Origin: Caecitellus pseudoparvulus
Lineage: Eukaryota > Protista > Bigyra: Bicosoecida
NCBI GenBank assembly: GCA_965644315.1
Contig: CBFFRQ010000064.1
Coordinates: forward strand, 62,001 to 126,000
Direction of reading: 5' to 3'
Length of the DNA stretch: 64,000 bases
The translations under genes were made by a program, and so were the position numbers. This document shows, one piece after another, positions 2,020 to 53,003 of the stretch; the first letter of the stretch is position 1; every line of letters begins with the position of its first letter. A model generated the notes under the pieces. That model saw only the letters and a program-made list of their open reading frames with translations, made no database searches and had not been told where the DNA came from.

Positions 2020-3604
2020 ATGGGCAAAGGCAAAAAGGGCAAAAAGGGAGGTGGGGCCTCCGCCTCGCATGCGACAGACAAGCGTGTTCGACAGGCCATT
2101 GCAAAGGCCCGGAAGAAGGTGAGGGTTAGGTCACCCGGCCCTACAGGAAGCGGGGCAGAGTGCTTTTGGCGTGTCGTCCATTTTCCGCAGACTGCCATGG
2201 CCACCTCACCCTGCCCTACCCTGGCCACAGACGAGCAAGACAGGCTACCATGACAGTCTCTCCAAGGACTTGATGTCCATTGGCTTGCGTGCGTGGATCG
2301 CTACCCCCCATTTCCTTCAGCAGGCCTGCCACACGACGCACCCCTGGCTCTCCTGTGCAGAGATTCGCAACGTGCGCTCCGACGGCAACTGCCTCTTCGG
2401 CGCGCTGGCAGACCAACTGTACGGTGACCAAAATCGCCACCCCGAGGTGCGGGAGGTGGTGGTCGCGCACATGACGCAGCACGCGGACGACTACCGGTTC
2501 TTCCTGGAGGAGGACGCGGTGTGGGAGGAGTACATTGACGACATGGCGTCTGCCGGTACGTGGGGGGGCAACGTCGAGATCCAGGCGGCCAGCATGGCCC
2601 TGCACTTGAACATCATCGTGCACCAGGCAGACGCGGCCCTGCCCCGCATGGCGGTGCGGAATTGGGGCCCAGACCCCGTCACACGCAAACGGCCACGGGA
2701 AGTGCACCTGGCGTATCACGGCGCTGAGCACTACAACTCAGTCCGACTGCGCAGCGACATTCTCCCGGGCACTCCCGCCTTGCCCTTCGATGTCGATGCC
2801 CTCATCGAGTCGGGTGGCTCGGACCCAGGCGTTCGCCCTGCTGACGTGCAGGGCATGACGGGGGGAGGTGTCGCGGCACTGAGTGGATCGGCCAAGGCTG
2901 CCGCGGCCAGCCAGGGCGCCGCTGCCCACGCACAGGCCGTGGCAGCCGCTGCTGCCGCACCTGACGCCGCCTCGTGGGGCGGTGCCGACCAGGCTGAGCT
3001 GTTCGTGCTGCGGAACACACCCTCCTTCCCGGAGAAGGGCACAGCCTATGTGCGTGAGGTGCTGCGCGCCGTGGCAGGGGACACCACTGCCGCAGTGGAC
3101 CTCATCACCACCTCTGTCTTCACAGCCGGCGAGGGGGACGGAGACGAACCTGCCCCTGCGGAGCCTGTGCCGTGGCAAGAGGTGGCGGGGGAGGCTGCCG
3201 CCAGCCGGAGTGAGGGAGTGCCCGACGCAGCCAGCGTCGGCAGCAGCACATCCTCCACGGCAGAGGCGAAACGCATGACGCCAGCCCAGCGCCGGAAGGC
3301 CAAGAAGGAGGCGGCCCTGGCCAAGGCGGCTGCCCGGGCCGCCGCCCGGGCCACTGCCGCTCCCCCTCCCCGCCGCAAGAAACTGAGCAACAAGGAGCGG
3401 CGGGCACTGCTGGCGGAAGCCAAGTTTGAAGAAAAACTTGCCCAGGCGGCAGCAGAGGGCGGCGATGGCAGTGGTCCCAGCCAGCAGGTCGCGGCTGGCG
3501 ACGCGTATGCCCAGGCTGTCGCCTCTGCTGCCGCCAGTGCGCTGCAAGTGGGGCTGGGCAAACCCACACGCTCGGTGCAGCGCAGTGCGACGGTGGACAT
3601 TTGA
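2020..3604 (+). CDS. OTU-domain deubiquitinase (OTUD3-like)
   Basis: Exons 2020-2118, 2231-2288 and 2361-3604; DGNCLF catalytic Cys motif, WGGNVEIQA, LAYHGAEHYNSV His motif; Lys/Ala-rich tail. Confidence 0.9.
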
Positions 3605-43805: not shown

Positions 43806-46023
43806 ATGGCTGTGCACTGGCGGCGGGTGCACGGCATCGGCGCGCCGAGCCAGCGCGAATGCCACCAGTTCACAGCGATAGGGGACAAGATCTACTGCTT
43901 CGGTGGCAACGACAGCTCCGCCCACTTCCAGCATGTCAGCGTGTGGGAGCCTGCAACGTTGCGCTGGTCTCAGCTGAGCCAGCCAGCACAAGGTGTGGTG
44001 AGCAGCAGCCCAGGCCCACGGTCGGCCCATGGGCAGGCAGTGCTGCCCGGAAACAAGCTGTTCATCTTTGGGGGGCTAGATGGCCGCGTGGACCGCAACG
44101 ACATCTTTGTCTTGGACGTCGGTGAGTTGGCACGCGCAGCACCGTGCGGAAATCGACGCAGCCTTGGGCAGACCTGAGCGCCCTTCCCTCACAGCCAAAC
44201 GAGCATGGGAGCAGTGGCCCAGTGAGCAGGCCCCCCCTCCGCGGCATTTTCATGTCTCCGTCTACTTGCGTGGCTGTGTGTACATGTTTGGCGGGTTCCG
44301 GGATGGTGAGTGGCTGAATGACTTGTGGGCCTACAGCCTTCGCCTGAAGCAATGGCAGCAGCTGACATGGGAGGGGCCTTGGCCCTGTGAGCGCGCCAGC
44401 TGTGTTGCTTTCACAGTGGACAACAGCCGCATCGTCCTGCACGGCGGGTACCGCTGGGGCGTCTTCCTGGATGACCTGTGGACACTACACGTGGGGGAGG
44501 ATGGCGAGGGCCACCCCACCTTCTCCTGGCAGCAGCACAGCCGCCCAGCACACGGCACGCCGCAGCAAGCAGGCGGGCAGATGACGCCGACTTGGCCACG
44601 GGCCCGCTCGGGCCACTCTGGCGTGCGCCTGGGGCCGCTGCTGGTCATGTTTGGTGGGCGGCACGAAGGCGGTCGCTTCGACGACCTGTTCGTGCTGAAC
44701 ACCTTCACCATGCGGTGGCACTTCCTGGAGTCCAGCGCAGACACGCCGCCGCCCCGTAAGACCCACGCCTCGGCGCGGGTGGGCACCACCATGTACGTTT
44801 TCGGCGGCAACGGCGACGCCGGGTGGCTGGGAGACATGTGGGAACTGGACCTGCGAGCCGTGCTGCCTGCCCTGGGCCACACCCTCGCCGTGCCCCGTCC
44901 GCCGCCGTCCCTGGCCACCGACCTGGCTGGCCTGCTGCCGCGGCGCCTGGCCAAGGGTCACAGGGCGGAGGCAGCATGCTCCCATGCTGGTAGTGCCCTG
45001 CCCAGCACCGCCCTGCCCCACACCGCCACGACGTGCCCTGGCCTGCTGCTGGAAGCGCTGGCAGGGGTGGCCCGTGGGAGCGCCACGATGCAGGCGTGCC
45101 CCGTGGCGACGGCTGTCGCTGCCCATGCGGCGCTGGACCAGCTCCTGCTGCAGAGGTACGGGCTGGACCAGGAGGTGACCAGCAGCACCGACGGTGGGAC
45201 GCGAGTCATTGACCCAGTGCAGGGGGGGGCGCAAGCCTCAGATCAGCAAGGAGACGGCGCGGCAGCATGTGCCGCTCCTTCGCACAGCCCTGCAGCTGGC
45301 GCTGGGAGCGGTGGTGAGGCGGTGACACCAGCCCAGTCAGAGGAGGGGGACGGCGGCCAGCTCATCACGGATTTTGGCTTCCACACTGAGCGCAGCACAG
45401 ACGAGCCAAGTGCCCCGGCGGACCTGGAGGTGGTGGTGGGTGGTGAGGTGTTCCCGCTTCATGGAAGTGTTCTTGCTGCCCGTTCGGCATACTTCGCCAC
45501 ACTCATGCAGGGGCGGTGGGCAGAGACAGCGCGGGGAGAGGGGGGTGAGTGGACCCCACATCGCGTGGAGCTGGGGGAGCTCCTGCCGCGCACCTTCACC
45601 GCCGTCGTGCAGTGGGTGTACACCGACAACGTGCCGGGCCTGGGCATGGACACAGGGCACTTGCGTCGAGTTCTAGCGGCCGCGGACAGGCTGGGGTGCG
45701 CCGGGCTCGCCCAGCTCTGCCAGCGCTTCTTCGAAGTGCGGTTGAGTGTTGACAGTGCTGTGAGCACGCTGTTGATGGCAGACAGCCTGAACGTCCAGCC
45801 GTTGCGGGATGTTGCCATGCGCTTCGTACAGACGCACTTCAGCGACGTGACGTCCACGCCGGGCTTCTCGCAACTGCCAGAGGCGCTGCTGCGGGAGGTG
45901 CTGGTGCAGCGCACGCACGCTGCTTCAGGCACTGCGGGTGGGGGCATGCCAGGTGGCGATGGGCACCAGACTCGCCCTCGTGCCCGTGGCACGAAGCGGC
46001 CCCGCGAAGCTGCTGAGCCTTGA
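43806..46023 (+). CDS. Kelch-repeat plus BTB/POZ protein (LZTR1-like)
   Basis: Intron 44122-44194; six Kelch GG blades (CFGG, IFGG, MFGG, LHGG, MFGG, VFGG), then BTB DLEVVVGGEVFPLHGSVLAARSAYF and a BACK-like region. Confidence 0.88.
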
Positions 46024-46053
46024 CGCATGCATTTGGGCGCGAGGCGTGAGGCA

Positions 46054-47389
46054 TCAGCCCCCCGTCGCGCCAAAGTACTCCTCCAGCTGCGAGCAGCTCG
46101 GCATTTGCATGTTCTGCGCCTGCTTGTGCAGCGCCTCGGCCCGGTGCCCCGTCTCGCGCCGAGCTCTGTACTTGTACTGCAGTTGCTGCTGCCGCTCGCG
46201 ATTGCACTGCCGCCGGAGGTGGCGGTGCATCTCAGCCTGCACATCCATTTCCACGACGCGCAGTCTTTGCTTGCTGCCTTTTATGTTTGTCCAGAAGTCT
46301 GACTTGACGTAGTAGGGAATGCCTGGCACCACGCCATGGCTGGCCGTGCGCCGGGGGATGCGGTACACAGCAGACCGGTTGAGGTGAAAGGAGGTGTCGG
46401 GGTCGGAGGAGAAGGAGGTCAGGGCGAAGAGCAGCATGAGGATGAGGGGCAGCAGCTGCATGAACTGCATGATGCGCACCTGCTCTGGGCTGCGGCCGCC
46501 GTCGTCCCCGCCGCCGCCTCCCCCGCCGCCGCCGCCACCGTTGCTGTCCATGTACACGAAGTTGCCGTCCCGCGTGCGGTACACCCGGCGCTGTCGGACG
46601 CCTGGGCCGAAGTTGCCAAACTGGCCGAACATCTGCGCGAAGAGCATCTCCTCTGGCGTCATGCCGTGGTGGGCTGCGTGGCCTGCATGCCCGCCACCCC
46701 GCCCACCGCCCCCAGATGGTGTCCCAGGCTCTTCCTCGCCGAATTGATCGTAGTGCTCGCGCTTGGCGGCGTCGCTGAGCACAGCAAAGGCGTGCCCCAC
46801 CTCTGCGAACGGCAATGCAGACCAACGCCAGTGCGGCGACGCGACCACGCCCGGCTGGCGCGGCAACACGCACTCTTGAACACCTCGTCCGCGCCAGGGG
46901 ACTTGTTCTTGTCCGGGTGGTACTTCAATGCGAGCTGCAGGGGGCGAGGTCGTTCATGGTGTGCCCAAACCAGCAGCTGAGGCCACGTGGGCAGCGGCGC
47001 CCGAAACTCCGCACAAGCCTCACCTTCCGGTACGCCTTCTTGACCTGGGCACTGGACGCCGTGCGGCTGATGCCAAGGACGTCGTACAGGTCTTGTGCAC
47101 GCAAAATGCGCTGTGTGGTCGCTGCGTCGGCCGTTGGTGTGCCTTTCCCCGAGCTGGCAGCTGAAGCTGGCGTCGACGTGCCGCCTCCGGAATTTGGAGT
47201 GGAAGGGGCTGGCCGCTGTGCGCGCTGCGCCTTTGCCTGCAGGCTTGCGAGCAGACTCCGAGCCTCTGTGGACTCATGAAGGCGCAGGGAACGCTCTAGC
47301 AGCCTGGTGGCCTTGCCTACGTCTCCGCTGCGAAGGGCAGCCTTGGCCTTGTCAAGGCACTGGTGTGCGGCATCCACGTTCACGTTCAT
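46054..47389 (-). CDS. DNAJB12: DnaJ subfamily B member 12/14-like ER membrane J-protein
   Basis: Three exons; N-terminal TPR-like helix, J domain (LYDVLG...KKAYRK-LALKYHPDKN), G/F-rich region, TM QLLPLILMLLFAL and DUF1977-like C-terminus. Confidence 0.88.
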
Positions 47390-47602
47390 GGCTGCTGTGA
47401 AGGGGGGCAAGAGACCCTGGGAGGGGGGGCAAAGCACTGCCGCACACTGGCTGCCGCCTCGGCACAATGCGCACGCCTCAAGATCAATGCAAGTGAAAGG
47501 ATTGAACCTGTGCAATTTTTGCCCTCCCTGCTGAATGCTGAGCGCGACTTCAAACGCTTCCGTGAGTGCCGCGCCCACAGTGCTGGCAAGAGACTGTGAC
47601 TC

Positions 47603-47622
47603 CGCGAAAAGTCGCGCCAAAA
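47603..47622 (-). promoter_or_regulatory. Two adjacent E2F-like sites in a divergent promoter
   Basis: cgcgaaaa and cgcgccaaaa (reverse TTTTCGCG and TTTTGGCGCG) between the DNAJB12 gene and the CaaX gene. Confidence 0.25.
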
Positions 47623-47713
47623 TCCGCTTGCACCCTCCAATGCATGCCACGTGATGCCTCTGTCCACTCCCAACCATAGGCTTTTGACGGATTTCTCAGG
47701 ACCAACCCCAAAC

Positions 47714-49084
47714 ATGTCGACTGTCGAGGTGAGCAAACGCGCTAAACGTGTCAGAAGGCTGCGTCTCGTCTCGCGCGATTGCTGCTGCCGCTCACTGGTA
47801 CCATGGCAGTCCTTACGCAATGCCACGCTGATCAAGGTTCGTTCTTCCCTCCCACCGTGCCTGCAGGAAGCCCAAACTGCAGTCGAAACGCAAACCCCCG
47901 AGGTGGCTCAGGCAGACTCTGAGACGGTGCCCGAGCAAGCAACCAGCGACGCGCAACCTGCTGGTGCAACGCCTGCCGAGAAAACTGCGACGGAGGGAGA
48001 AACTAGTGCGGGAGATGCTTCAGTAGCAGCTGAGCCAGAGGACGCACAAGCAACTGAGGGAAGTGGTGAGGCCGCACCTGCAGAAGGTGAGGCAGGCCAG
48101 GCTCCGCCTGCTGCAACTGAGGATTCAGGCCCGCAGGCAGACTCAGAGCAAGGCGAGGCAGCTGGAAGCGGGGACGATACAACTGCTGCAACGTCTGAGC
48201 AGCCTATTGAGCCTGCTGGGGCGCCAGCACCAGGCGCCTCCGCCTCTGAAGCGACGGCAGGTGACGAAGCTGACGAAGCCGGTGACGCTTCGAAGGCAGG
48301 CGATGCACCCAAGCCGGCAGGTGAGGATACCCCGGCTGAAGGGCAAGCTGAGAAGCCTGAAACTTCAGCTGCAGATACGCAAGAGGGGTCTGACGCAGCC
48401 TCTGATGGTGCAGCTGGTGCAGGACAAGCAAAAGACGAAGCCGCCGAAGCAGAGGCACCCCCCGCACCAGACTCTGCGGCGGCGGAGGCGCAGGAAGCAT
48501 CTCCAGAACCCGCAGGCGGGGAAGGTGCTCCCTCAGCTGAAGCGATTCAGGTTGAGGCAGTCGAGGCACCGCAAGCGTCAGAGACACAGCAGGCAGGCGA
48601 AGGTGGTGGCGGCGACCAGGAGGCAAGCGGGGAGGAGGACAAGAAAACAGCGGAGCTTGTGGCCACCCTGCGCGCTGCATCGGCTGACTTGCTCACCATT
48701 TCGCCTGACGATATTTCAGAAGTGTGTGCTGTGGAAGAGCCCTCTCCGCTTGTGCTGCACGCAGCGAAGCTCACCATGAGCGTCATTGGGGAAGATGCCA
48801 GCACATGGCCTGAGATTCAAAAAGTCATGACACAAGAAGCGTTCCCCAAGCGGGTGTTCCAAGTGAAGCCGACCGAGGTGTCTGAAGGGGCCACCGCGGG
48901 CTTGGCTGCAGCTCGTGGGAGTGACGCATTGGAGCCCAAACTGGCAGGAAAGGACTTTGCCAGTGTTGGCAAACTTTCTGCTTGGCTCAATGCCTTGGAC
49001 AAAGCTCTTGAAGTCGGCCCTGTCGCATTGCCAGAGTCGGCAGGCGCCGAAGATGCTGAGTCACAAGCGTGCATCATCATGTAA
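47714..49084 (+). CDS. Acidic disordered protein with a C-terminal dynein MTBD-like domain and CaaX box
   Basis: Exons 47714-47728 and 47867-49084; ISPDDISEV..VEEPSPLV...VIG....TWPEIQKVM...FPKRV...VGKLSAWLNA; ends CIIM-stop. Confidence 0.7.
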   Translation: MSTVEVSKRAKRVRRLRLVSRDCCCRSLVPWQSLRNATLIKVRSSLPPCLQEAQTAVETQTPEVAQADSETVPEQATSDAQPAGATPAEKTATEGETSAGDASVAAEPEDAQATEGSGEAAPAEGEAGQAPPAATEDSGPQADSEQGEAAGSGDDTTAATSEQPIEPAGAPAPGASASEATAGDEADEAGDASKAGDAPKPAGEDTPAEGQAEKPETSAADTQEGSDAASDGAAGAGQAKDEAAEAEAPPAPDSAAAEAQEASPEPAGGEGAPSAEAIQVEAVEAPQASETQQAGEGGGGDQEASGEEDKKTAELVATLRAASADLLTISPDDISEVCAVEEPSPLVLHAAKLTMSVIGEDASTWPEIQKVMTQEAFPKRVFQVKPTEVSEGATAGLAAARGSDALEPKLAGKDFASVGKLSAWLNALDKALEVGPVALPESAGAEDAESQACIIM

Positions 49085-49408
49085 GGCTGCGGCTGGCAGC
49101 ATGGTCACGCCAGTAGGTCTGCCAGGGCGATTCTTGGCTGTTCCAGACAAAGGTGCCAGTGGAACCTACTTGGTGCGATCAAAGTGAGCAGTTACAAGGG
49201 GACGGTGGCCTTGCATCCGACGCAGTTGCAGTTCACAGAGTGACCTCCCCTGGCCCCCATACCAACCACAGCAATGAACAAAAAAAATCTCCCATACCAC
49301 TGACGCCGCCTCTCACATGCTATAGTGTGCAGCCTTGCTCTCACCTCCCCCCCTCAAGGCGATTGCGCTGCGTTGTCATCGGAGCCCGCGTGTGTAGCTC
49401 AGACAAAC

Positions 49409-50345
49409 ATGCTGAGGGTCGCATCGCTGCTCCTGGCAGCGGCCTCGGTGGTCACGGTGACCGCTACCACCTTGCGAGGCCATGTGGCAGATGCCGCGGC
49501 ATCTCCTCCGACTCCTGTGTGGCCAGACACCTGGCAGGCCCCTTTCAATGGTGTGGGCCGCGCACTGGAGCAGTGACGTGCGCAGAATCGCACACCACGC
49601 CAACCACCTTGCCCCTGACATGTTTCACAGAGACGGCCGGCATCCTGTCTAAAGGCAACACTACTGGCTACACATGGTACAACTGGCCAACAAAAGAGAC
49701 CCGCACTGACCGGGCATCAGTGCGTGATGAGCCCCCATTGGCAGCGTGCGGGTCGGTGCGGAAAATGAACGCTTCACTGGTCGCGTTGCTCAGGGCAAGT
49801 TTGACCGGTATTGTGGCAGTGTTGAGAACTCGGATACACCGTGCTCGTAAGTGCCTGGCGCTGCCCTGCAGTTTGGTCAAGTGATCTCACGTTCCAATTC
49901 CACGGCTCACAGCCACATCGTGACTGGTGGCAAGCGATACCTGTGGTACCCCCAGCTCCAGCACTGCTGCTTTTGCTGCGACGACGCGGCAGGCTGCGGC
50001 ACGCTCGTCCCTGATTGGATTGGAAACTCAGATGGCTCATACCAAGGCCAGGTTCGCACCCCGACCGGAGTGCTGGCTGACAAGTGGCTTGTGAAGGGCC
50101 TGCAGAGCAACTACTGGTACCAGACCCCCGTCACAGGCGCAGCTGTGGGCTTGGACCAGCAGCCAAACGACGTCCAGTGGTGGAACCCTGAGCGGTGGAC
50201 AACTCAACCCATCCCCTCTTCTATCTTTGCCTTGCCCTCCTCCACTTGCAGTCAGAAGTGCGCACTCTTTTCCATCTGCACTGTGGCGCAGAAATACGGC
50301 GCACAGTCGGCGGAAGCTGCCGCGTTCAAGTCCAAGTGGGACTGA
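49409..50345 (+). CDS. Secreted Cys-rich protein, possibly ependymin-related (EPDR/LolA fold)
   Basis: Signal peptide; four exons give PVWPDTWQAPFNE...YNW...RTDRASGKFDRYCGSV...TPCSHIV..GKRYL.YP...CCFCC...GCG.L.PDW. Confidence 0.7.
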
Positions 50346-50395
50346 TCCTACCACGATCCAAATACACTTCAATACACGCATTGGCCGCACACTCA

Positions 50396-53003
50396 TCAAA
50401 ACATGTCAAACGGATTTGCTTGATCATCTTCTTGGGTGGCAGCTTCGGCAAACGGATCCGTCGCGCTCGCTGGCGCAGGCGCAGGCGCCCCCACACTCCC
50501 CTGTGCAGCAGGCGATGCAGACCCCAAACTGTCAAACGGATCCGCCGCGCTCGCTGGCGCAGGCGCAGGCGCCCCCACACTCCCCTGTGCAGCAGGCGAT
50601 GCAGACCCCAAACTGTCAAACGGATCCGTCGCGCTCGCTGGCGCAGGCGCAGGCGCCCCCACACTCCCCTGTGCAGCAGGCGATGCAGACCCCAAACTGC
50701 CAAACGGATCCGCCGCGCTCGCTGGCGCAGGCGCCCCCACACTCCCCTGTCCAGCAGGCGATGCAGACCCCAAACTGCCAAACGGATCCGCCGCGCTCGC
50801 TGGCGCAGGCGCCCCCACACTCCCCTGTCCAGCAGGCGATGCAGACCCCAAACTGCCAAACGGATCCGCCGCGCTCGCTGGCGCAGGCGCCCCCACACTC
50901 CCCTGTCCAGCAGGCGATGCAGACCCCAAACTGCCAAACGGACCCGCAGCACCAACATGAGAAGGCTTCGGTTCCACTAGTCCTGCAGGTGGCTCTGATG
51001 TCGGTCCCATCCTGGCGTAGGAACCTGCCCCATCCGAAGCTTGGGCAGAAGACCCTCCGCTGGGAGAGCTGGCAAACCCATACGCATCTTGGAAGTCAGC
51101 CGAGCCTGTTGGAGACGTACCGACGCTGGAGCTGGCTTGCGCCACTGGTGACGGCTCTGGCGCTGGCGCTCTGCTCGCGGAAGCTCTGTGGCGGGGAACA
51201 GGTGCCACGTTGCTCCCCTTCAAAGACACAATGCCAGAGAAAGGGTCGGCGGGGGCTGGAGCAGGCTCAGGCTCGGGAGCCGCAGCTTGTGTTGGGGGCG
51301 CCCCATACCCTGGATGCTGTGCATAGCCCTGTCCGTGGTAGGAGGCGTACGGCACTTGCCCTGGGTTGGGTCCTGGGTGCTGCTGTGGCACGTACTGACC
51401 ATGTGGCACTTGGCTTGGGTAGCCTTGGGCCCCAGGCACTGGGCCGGGAGCGTGCACATGCCCCGGGTGCCCTTGCTGCTGCATGTGTGGGTACTGGTGC
51501 TGGGCGTGCTGCAGATAGCCAGCATGGTGTGGCGGGGGCATGCCTGGGTGGCCGTGCCCGGGAGGCAGCTGCAGAGACCCCAATCCGCCGCTGGCGCCCC
51601 GAGCCCTGGCTGTTACGTCAGCAGGGTGACTTCCACGGGAAGGATCTGGCGGGGCGCTCGCCATGTCTGCCACCAGAGCGTCAAACACGCCGAACGAGGA
51701 GGCTCGCTCGCGGTCGCTGGCCATACTTCCCGCCTGGGACATGGTGGACTGGTCCGGCGCCGACCCTGCCATCGCAGGAGTGTACTGCATGTTCAGTGCC
51801 TTCACGTCGGCAAAAGACGGCTTGGGAGCACCTGCTGGTGCCGGTGCTGGTGCCGGTGCTGGTGCACCAAACGGATCCACAGATGCGGCCGGAGCTGGTG
51901 CCGGTGCCGGTGCACCAAACGGATCCACAGATGCGGCCGGAGCTGGTGCCGGTGCCGGTGCACCAAACGGATCCACAGATGCAGCCGGAGCTGGAGCTGG
52001 TGCCGGTGCTGGAGCTGGTGCCGGTGCCGGTGCACCAAACGGATCCACAGATGCGGCCGGAGCTGGTGCCGGTGCTGGTGCACCAAACGGATCCACAGAT
52101 GCAGCCGGAGCTGGTGCCGGTGCCGGTGCACCAAACGGATCCACAGATGCAGCCGGAGCTGGTGCCGGTGCTGGTGCACCAAACGGATCCACAGATGCAG
52201 CTGGAGCTGGTGCCGGCGCTGGTGCACCAAACGGATCCACAGATGCAGCCGGAGCTGGTGCCGGCGCTGGTGCACCGAACGGATCCACAGATGAAGCAAA
52301 AGGATCGCTGGTCACTGCTTCTGTCTGATGGTGGCCGCTGTTGTTGTTGCGAGGGGGGCCAGTGACGGGGATGCCAGGGCTGGATGCAGTGGCTGCTGCT
52401 GCTGTTGACGCAGCCGAGGAGCCTGTGGGGGTCCTGCGGGTAGGGCGCAGCACAGCAGCAGGGCCTTTCTCTCTCAATGCCGCCATGATGTTTTTGTCAA
52501 ACCACTGGCGCCGAGTGTACTTGGCTTCCATGTGGGCCCGAACCTTCGCAGGTTCAGCGGCAGAGGGCTTCGGGTGTGCGGCAGGGTCCCAGGTAGCGTA
52601 CCAAGCCTTGGCTGCAGCTTTGTTGCCAAAGATTTTCTTCATGTGCTGGTCCGAGAAGTCACTCATGCCGACGCCCATGCACCGCGCCCCGAAATCCCGC
52701 CTGCGCACCACGCCGGTGACGTGAGGCGTGTTGACCTGCTAAGCACGAGGCCTCCTCGGCGACCTGCAGGGCGCCCAGCGGCGGGGAACTCACAGGATCC
52801 CAGCACACTGCTCACAGACAAAGGATCCCACGGTGATGTTGGCATAGCGCGTGCCCTGCAGGAGGACGGGGCATGGTGAGGAACTCAGTGCTTGGCGTGT
52901 GAACGCTTCCGGTACGCACCTTTGCCGTGCAATCAAAGCAAGTGTTGTTGCTCTTCTTCCGCATCATGGCCCTCAGTGTAGCTTCATTCTTTTCCGCTGC
53001 CAT
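50396..53003 (-). CDS. ArfGAP-domain endocytic adaptor (AGFG/HRB-like) with DPF repeats and terminal NPF
   Basis: Three exons; zinc finger NNTCFDC...FVCEQCAGILR, GNKAAAKAW, KYTRRQW; about 17 DPF motifs; C-terminal ANPFDMF. Confidence 0.88.
50449..50945. repeat. Coding tandem repeat: 3 x 84 bp plus 3 x 78 bp
   Basis: Unit starts at 50449, 50533, 50617, 50701, 50779 and 50857, with a partial unit at 50935; encodes DPF(D/G)SLGSASPA(A/G)QGSVGAPAP(AP)ASA. Confidence 0.93.
51830..52292. repeat. Coding tandem repeat: nine copies, 48-bp period (one 72-bp interval)
   Basis: cacc(a/g)aacggatcc core at 51865, 51913, 51961, 52033, 52081, 52129, 52177, 52225 and 52273; encodes SVDPFGAPAPAPAPAA. Confidence 0.93.

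Follow-up and report, generated by a model that had tools for sequence, protein, structure and literature searches.

A gene on the forward strand of the window, the whole stretch of 64,000 nucleotides analysed here from the bicosoecid flagellate Caecitellus pseudoparvulus, encodes what is, judged from its sequence, a true homolog of the dynein microtubule-binding domain (MTBD) that stands in front of a CaaX box. Usually the MTBD is regarded as one component of the dynein motor, whereas in this gene it appears as a portable module with a putative lipid anchor, kept across diverged species. We give roughly even chances to an adaptor role, in which a prenylated pseudo-MTBD would bind a putative partner protein.

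The reading frame at 47714–49084 (+) is open throughout and terminates in ESQACIIM-stop (Table 1). The first-pass annotation had reported this frame with its CIIM-stop, of which the open frame and the terminus stand but the length probably does not: codons 6–51, with a basic, Cys-rich translation, coincide with an in-frame, stop-free stretch that is probably an intron. In the ortholog L024 a 104-nt phase-0 intron follows codon 5, as in the C. pseudoparvulus gene, and both splice sites of the latter are intact in a 98%-identical sibling contig, L003. Because the L024 intron lies at the same place and in the same phase, the stretch at 47729–47866 is taken as an intron, whose removal would probably leave a protein of ~410 aa. 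The predicted spliced product of 410 aa has a pI of 4.05 and a net charge of −67, with −55 across its first 260 residues; the joined exons served for this calculation of length and charge only, and exon 2 or parts of it were the query in database searches. The long Ala/Glu/Gly/Pro-rich arm previously described ahead of the domain was recovered at about 255–260 aa and is predicted to be disordered. A search for tandem repeats in the arm DNA gave nothing beyond one 9-bp doublet, and the arms of the orthologs are similar in make-up and shorter.

Table 1. Features of the MTBD–CaaX gene, in window coordinates
Feature	Position	Strand	Basis or remark
Exon 1 (MSTVE, start codon)	47714–47728	+	sequence; five-codon first exon MASAQ in ortholog L024
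Probable intron, 138 nt, GTGAGC...CTGCAG, pyrimidine tract	47729–47866	+	sequence, L024 and L003
Acidic Ala/Glu/Gly/Pro-rich low-complexity arm, ~255 aa, predicted disordered	47867–48631	+	charge, composition
Dynein MTBD-fold domain with short stalk-helix stubs	about 48632–49027	+	phmmer, profile, ESM Atlas, AlphaFold/structure searches
CC1 stub	about 48635–48691	+	
Helix 1 to helix 3, acidic part of microtubule face	48695–48838	+	net charge
Helix 5, helix 6 and CC2, best-conserved part of the family; Lys at R3382 and E3378 positions	48884–49012	+	
CC2 stub	about 48959–49012	+	
Flexible unconserved linker, ~15 aa	49013–49057	+	mean pairwise identity 0.17; low pLDDT
Conserved tail ESQ-A/S-C-x-I-M-stop	49058–49084	+	CaaX box 49070–49081

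The neighbours of the gene are a DnaJ gene on one side and, downstream, a small gene. A homolog of the latter (window 49409–50345) also lies downstream of the ortholog of another species (L024/L027; tblastx 58–62%), and gene order is, by this sequence comparison, conserved between the two loci. The sibling contig L003 comes from an assembly labelled Symbiodinium sp. KB8 (GCA_905221625.1) and is 98% identical to window 44494–50490; therefore, the KB8 assembly probably holds kin of the source flagellate. The KB8 gene model P0001, a fusion with the next gene, was rejected, as the CIIM-stop is retained in the underlying DNA. A dynein fragment or pseudogene was likewise rejected, the neighbouring genes being unrelated and the layout being kept in orthologs. 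The source genome (G000) is compact (64% GC, 30.6 Mb), and its matches to the dynein heavy-chain stalk, at least 20 in number, mark it as that of a flagellate. Two stalk matches, at C54 381354–382424 and C45 6892–7962, have near-equal scores and the same sequence in the parts compared, and reflect either a recent duplication or redundant contigs. The 18S rRNA of the genome, part of a tandem array at C81 462535–464231, is short (1,697 nt). Another full-length small-subunit match, weaker and 1,496 nt long, lies at C213 27842–29337 and belongs to an organelle or bacterium.

Homology to the MTBD was detected by several sequence methods. Among PDB sequences, phmmer aligned the last 150 residues without gaps, over their residues 10–146, to a trypanosome dynein heavy chain (E = 3e-7); the top PDB match, a designed TIM barrel, was rejected as a sum of weak repeats. 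The HMMER comparison with the dynein MT family that had been suggested at first pass gave a divided answer. The Pfam scan including MT/PF12777 returned no match at E up to 10 for the protein or its orthologs, whereas a profile of dynein MTBDs only (n = 17) scored the domain at 31.7 bits, against a maximum of 8.8 in 2000 shuffles and −1.1 for the reversed sequence, and orthologs at 31.7 and 35.1 bits. In the ESM Atlas, 28 of the 30 feature matches were PF12777 clusters, with a low recognition value for the query. Metagenome assemblies, searched exhaustively, contained three orthologs with domain identities of 34–43%, so that the family comprises four independent sequences, each ortholog consisting of an acidic arm, an MTBD-fold domain, an unconserved linker and ESQSC(C/S/V)IM-stop. 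Word-based protein searches returned nothing besides the sibling and these three, a metagenome DNA scan gave a single locus, from the P0002 species, and viral contigs gave no match. In a tree the CaaX family forms one clade on a long branch, from which the parent dynein cannot be named. The AAA+ ring is absent from this 410-aa gene, which has no Pfam match and no motor nearby, and the antiparallel coiled-coil stalk is absent as well, the stubs of ~19 and ~18 residues having disordered flanks and no CC1 proline.

The AlphaFold model, made from a five-row family alignment containing no dynein sequences, has a pLDDT of 74, falling under 50 from residue 131 on, and predicts helices H1–H6 between CC1 and CC2. 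It matches the mouse MTBD 3err with a Z of 17.7 and an rmsd of 2.2 Å over 131 residues, and Foldseek gave a TM of 0.77. The AlphaFold and Foldseek comparison proposed in the first-pass annotation thus agrees with its claim of MTBD homology, as do the profile score and the orthologs, and the short stubs and motor-free locus bear out its statement that AAA ring and stalk coiled coil are lacking.

The CaaX end, pointed out from the start, is conserved in four species beside an unconserved linker: the termini before the stop are CIIM, CCIM, CSIM and CVIM, and the box is also present in the sibling strain. Invariant columns across the four species number 6/8 in the tail and 0/15 in the linker (p = 0.0003), with mean pairwise identities of 0.81 and 0.17, and the MTBD-fold domain stands 15–20 residues ahead of the box. 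C-x-I-M-stop occurs 19 times in the source genome, and the full pattern gave 29 matches against 4 in a reversed control. Three prenyltransferase beta genes are present (RabGGT beta, GGTase-I beta and a third with FTase-like motifs), together with genes for ICMT and PDE-delta. Neither a polybasic stretch nor an upstream palmitoyl Cys was found near the CaaX box of the C. pseudoparvulus protein, where the tail before the Cys is acidic; a second Cys beside the CaaX Cys occurs in P0002 only (CCIM). High-affinity ciliary cargo of PDE-delta has Ser at −3 and a large hydrophobic residue at −1; the family has an invariant Ser at −3 but Ala or Ser at −1, as in low-affinity cargo (PMC5512577).

It is very improbable that CIIM is not the true end and that ATG-TAA-G is a splice donor (GTAAG) from which the transcript runs into a further exon. 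Donor-like sequences are indeed found at the stop, where the window reads GTAAGG, the sibling GTAAGT and two orthologs GTGAGC. However, the donor-like GTAAG is largely forced, because the Met codon and stop give GTR, which arises from any Met-stop, and a G follows the stop in three lineages out of four, for which p is about 0.11 at the local rate of 19/58. Moreover, ortholog L026 has GTAGAC, with a gene called on the opposite strand about 110 nt further on, similarity between species beyond the stop lies, among the matches listed, only in the next gene, and C-x-I-M-stop is a common terminus in this genome.

The microtubule-facing helices differ in charge from those of dyneins. Summed over the sequence segments H1+H3+H6, net charge is −6 in the C. 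pseudoparvulus protein and −6, −2 and −7 in the orthologs, whereas the 17 dyneins compared range from −1 to +8, with a mean of +2.8; H1 alone is −5 and H3 −1, while dynein H1 averages +1.4. One dynein of the source genome is slightly negative (−1), and a second stand-alone MTBD of the genome, C43, reaches +5. The register to mouse numbering combines the structural alignment (model 1–132 to 3275–3407) with the mouse MTBD sequence, and R3306, K3334 and R3342 are presumed positions of interest. In this register, S, P and C occupy the positions of K3298, K3299 and R3306, and P, Q and Q those of K3334, R3337 and R3342. Helix 6 is the exception: every one of the four family members has Lys at the E3378 position, and three of them have it at the R3382 position as well. 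In mouse dynein, E3378K leads to longer runs, and the microtubule-binding face of dynein is described as strongly positive (PMC4987762). Invariant columns are more frequent in helix 5–helix 6–CC2 (17/43) than in the first half (15/80; Fisher p = 0.017 for a segment chosen post hoc). The earlier caveat that helix 1 is acidic is therefore true and can be widened, since loss of basic residues extends beyond helix 1 and is common to the whole family; weak or repurposed binding, raised there as a possibility, is judged the likelier case, with the face acidic in all four members.

The fold also matches chains outside dynein motors. Structure searches with two independent models returned the same non-dynein chains, ranked below dyneins: 9fqr_Xl from the bovine sperm axoneme (1337–1493; Z 9.6, 9.7), 9ya2_L from the Toxoplasma intraconoidal microtubule (about 120 residues; Z 9.6, 9.0), 9e5c_2e from the T. 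brucei doublet (138–416; Z 7.1, 6.6), and 7jrj_I (Z 6.9, 6.1) and 7jtk_C (453–591; Z 10.2) from the Chlamydomonas radial spoke. Unrelated chains reached Z ≤ 5.6, and Z values of 6–10 are leads and no proof, as helical folds can match by arrangement. RSP2 and EFCAB5 are our guessed names for 7jtk_C, 7jrj_I and 9fqr_Xl. The five chains, which belong to microtubule assemblies, share with the CaaX protein a motor-free MTBD-like fold; unlike it, they are large and multidomain, with 8–15% identity. From its length and range, 9ya2_L is probably ICMAP2, of which about 10% of 1,678 residues were resolved, in the form of a dimer bound to the intraconoidal microtubule; the text of that paper does not mention the MTBD fold and names dynein only in a reference (PMC12819142). 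Because of the matches to 9ya2_L and the radial-spoke chains, the fold may have roles on microtubules as well as within the radial spoke, and the radial-spoke and conoid matches suggest that MTBD reuse is widespread and missed by Pfam.

The source genome itself encodes at least four further motorless MTBD proteins (C43, C57, C68 and C69). C43 (about 566040–566570; L052:1354–1890) is a small stand-alone protein of pI 9.7 with the MTBD fold and a poly-Glu tail, and is a better candidate than the CaaX protein for real microtubule binding. Long frames with 2–4 MTBD-like repeats lie at about 1267000–1271000 of C69, 1074000–1076000 of C68 and 84500–86100 of C57, with IQ motifs in those of C69 and C68. 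P0005 (L066:3001–5685), an 894-aa metagenome protein, has six MTBD repeats, some basic and others acidic, without a motor, and its gene adjoins a hybrid histidine kinase gene. All these share the lack of a motor with the CaaX protein but differ from it, C43 in its basic MTBD and the others in their tandem copies, and neither C43 nor P0005 has a CaaX end.

The comparisons above show a dynein stalk-tip domain that has been freed from motor and stalk, with its fold retained, and that stands before a conserved CaaX box. In the mechanism we propose, the Cys of CIIM would, by known biochemistry, be farnesylated, trimmed and methylated, and the lipid would give the domain a weak, reversible membrane anchor on its stalk side that no ATP-linked switch controls. 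The domain may mainly bind a flagellar or cortical cytoskeleton partner and bring it to the membrane, microtubule contact being weak or indirect and the acidic arm a spacer. Two features point us to partner-protein binding, the acidity of helices 1 and 3 and the conservation of the helix 5–helix 6–CC2 half, and, because most of the gripping charges are lost, the protein more likely holds another protein than a microtubule at the membrane. The homology and fold, the conserved CaaX box beside an unconserved linker, the encoded prenyltransferase beta subunits, ICMT and PDE-delta, the face charges relative to the dyneins and C43, and the fold matches in 7jtk_C (Z 10.2) and other non-dynein chains are all consistent with such an adaptor. 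In its favour, too, the light chain LC1 covers an acidic patch on the outer-arm gamma MTBD (PMC10295483). Against this stand the number of independent sequences (n = 4), a charge summed by segment that is also −1 in one dynein of the genome, and the helix-6 Lys at the R3382 (3/4) and E3378 (4/4) positions.

Those lysines favour a direct hold on the lattice, in which helix 6 and what is left of the interface would bind, the prenyl group would lie opposite, and the microtubule would be kept no more than about 10 nm from the membrane; many copies could strengthen this hold. In the known MTBD layout, and in the model, the tail leaves towards the stalk and the binding face lies at the other end of the domain, and the Toxoplasma chain 9ya2_L (probably ICMAP2; Z 9.0–9.6) forms a dimer on a microtubule. 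We nevertheless consider direct binding doubtful, since H1 and H3 are acidic in 4/4 and the protein has a pI of 4.05 where the dynein face is described as strongly positive (PMC4987762), and since polybasic or palmitoylation signals are absent, barring the second Cys in one ortholog. The interpretation in the first-pass annotation survives in part: MTBD homology, the loss of motor and stalk and the conserved CaaX box are borne out by profile, structure and orthologs, but the acidic microtubule face in 4/4, the loss of the K3298, K3299 and R3306 equivalents in the C. pseudoparvulus protein and the absence of a second membrane signal beside the CaaX box weaken the membrane–microtubule tether. 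It is put forward only tentatively that a motor-free, prenylated, lattice-binding MTBD acts as a single-protein tether at flagellar roots or cortex, as one of an unrecognised class of reused tips (radial spokes, ICMAP2). Alternatively, the lipid may be a handle for a protein; the product, either soluble or carried by PDE-delta, would then serve LC1 or other factors that bind MTBDs as a decoy or chaperone, which seems unlikely. Spindly and CENP-F, known for farnesyl-dependent protein binding, the encoded PDE-delta and the acidic residues ahead of the CaaX box agree with such a role. The invariant Ser at −3 also recalls high-affinity ciliary cargo, but Ala or Ser at −1 is of the low-affinity type (PMC5512577).

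Either outcome for the MTBD–CaaX protein would be informative, giving a new membrane–microtubule link or a second, protein-binding use of the MTBD fold, and the protein is small enough for a direct test to be easy. A literature search that covered few subscription papers, and not those on radial-spoke structures, turned up no account of a CaaX-terminated MTBD. The protein resembles the mouse DYNC1H1 MTBD (3275–3407; PDB 3err, 6rzb; PF12777 core) in its six-helix fold between two stalk stubs, retaining the core Trp and Phe and a short H2–H3 loop (no flap). It differs from the dynein heavy chain in lacking the AAA ring and coiled-coil stalk and in falling below Pfam detection, and from the dynein MTBD in its acidic H1 and H3, CaaX tail and acidic disordered arm. 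Lipid-anchored linkers of microtubules or cortex are known in trypanosome CAP5.5, plant PCaP2/MAP18 and paralemmin, which, like the present protein, combine a lipid anchor with an acidic low-complexity or cytoskeleton-binding part. Their folds, however, are unrelated to the MTBD, and CAP5.5 and PCaP2/MAP18 are anchored through N-terminal acylation.
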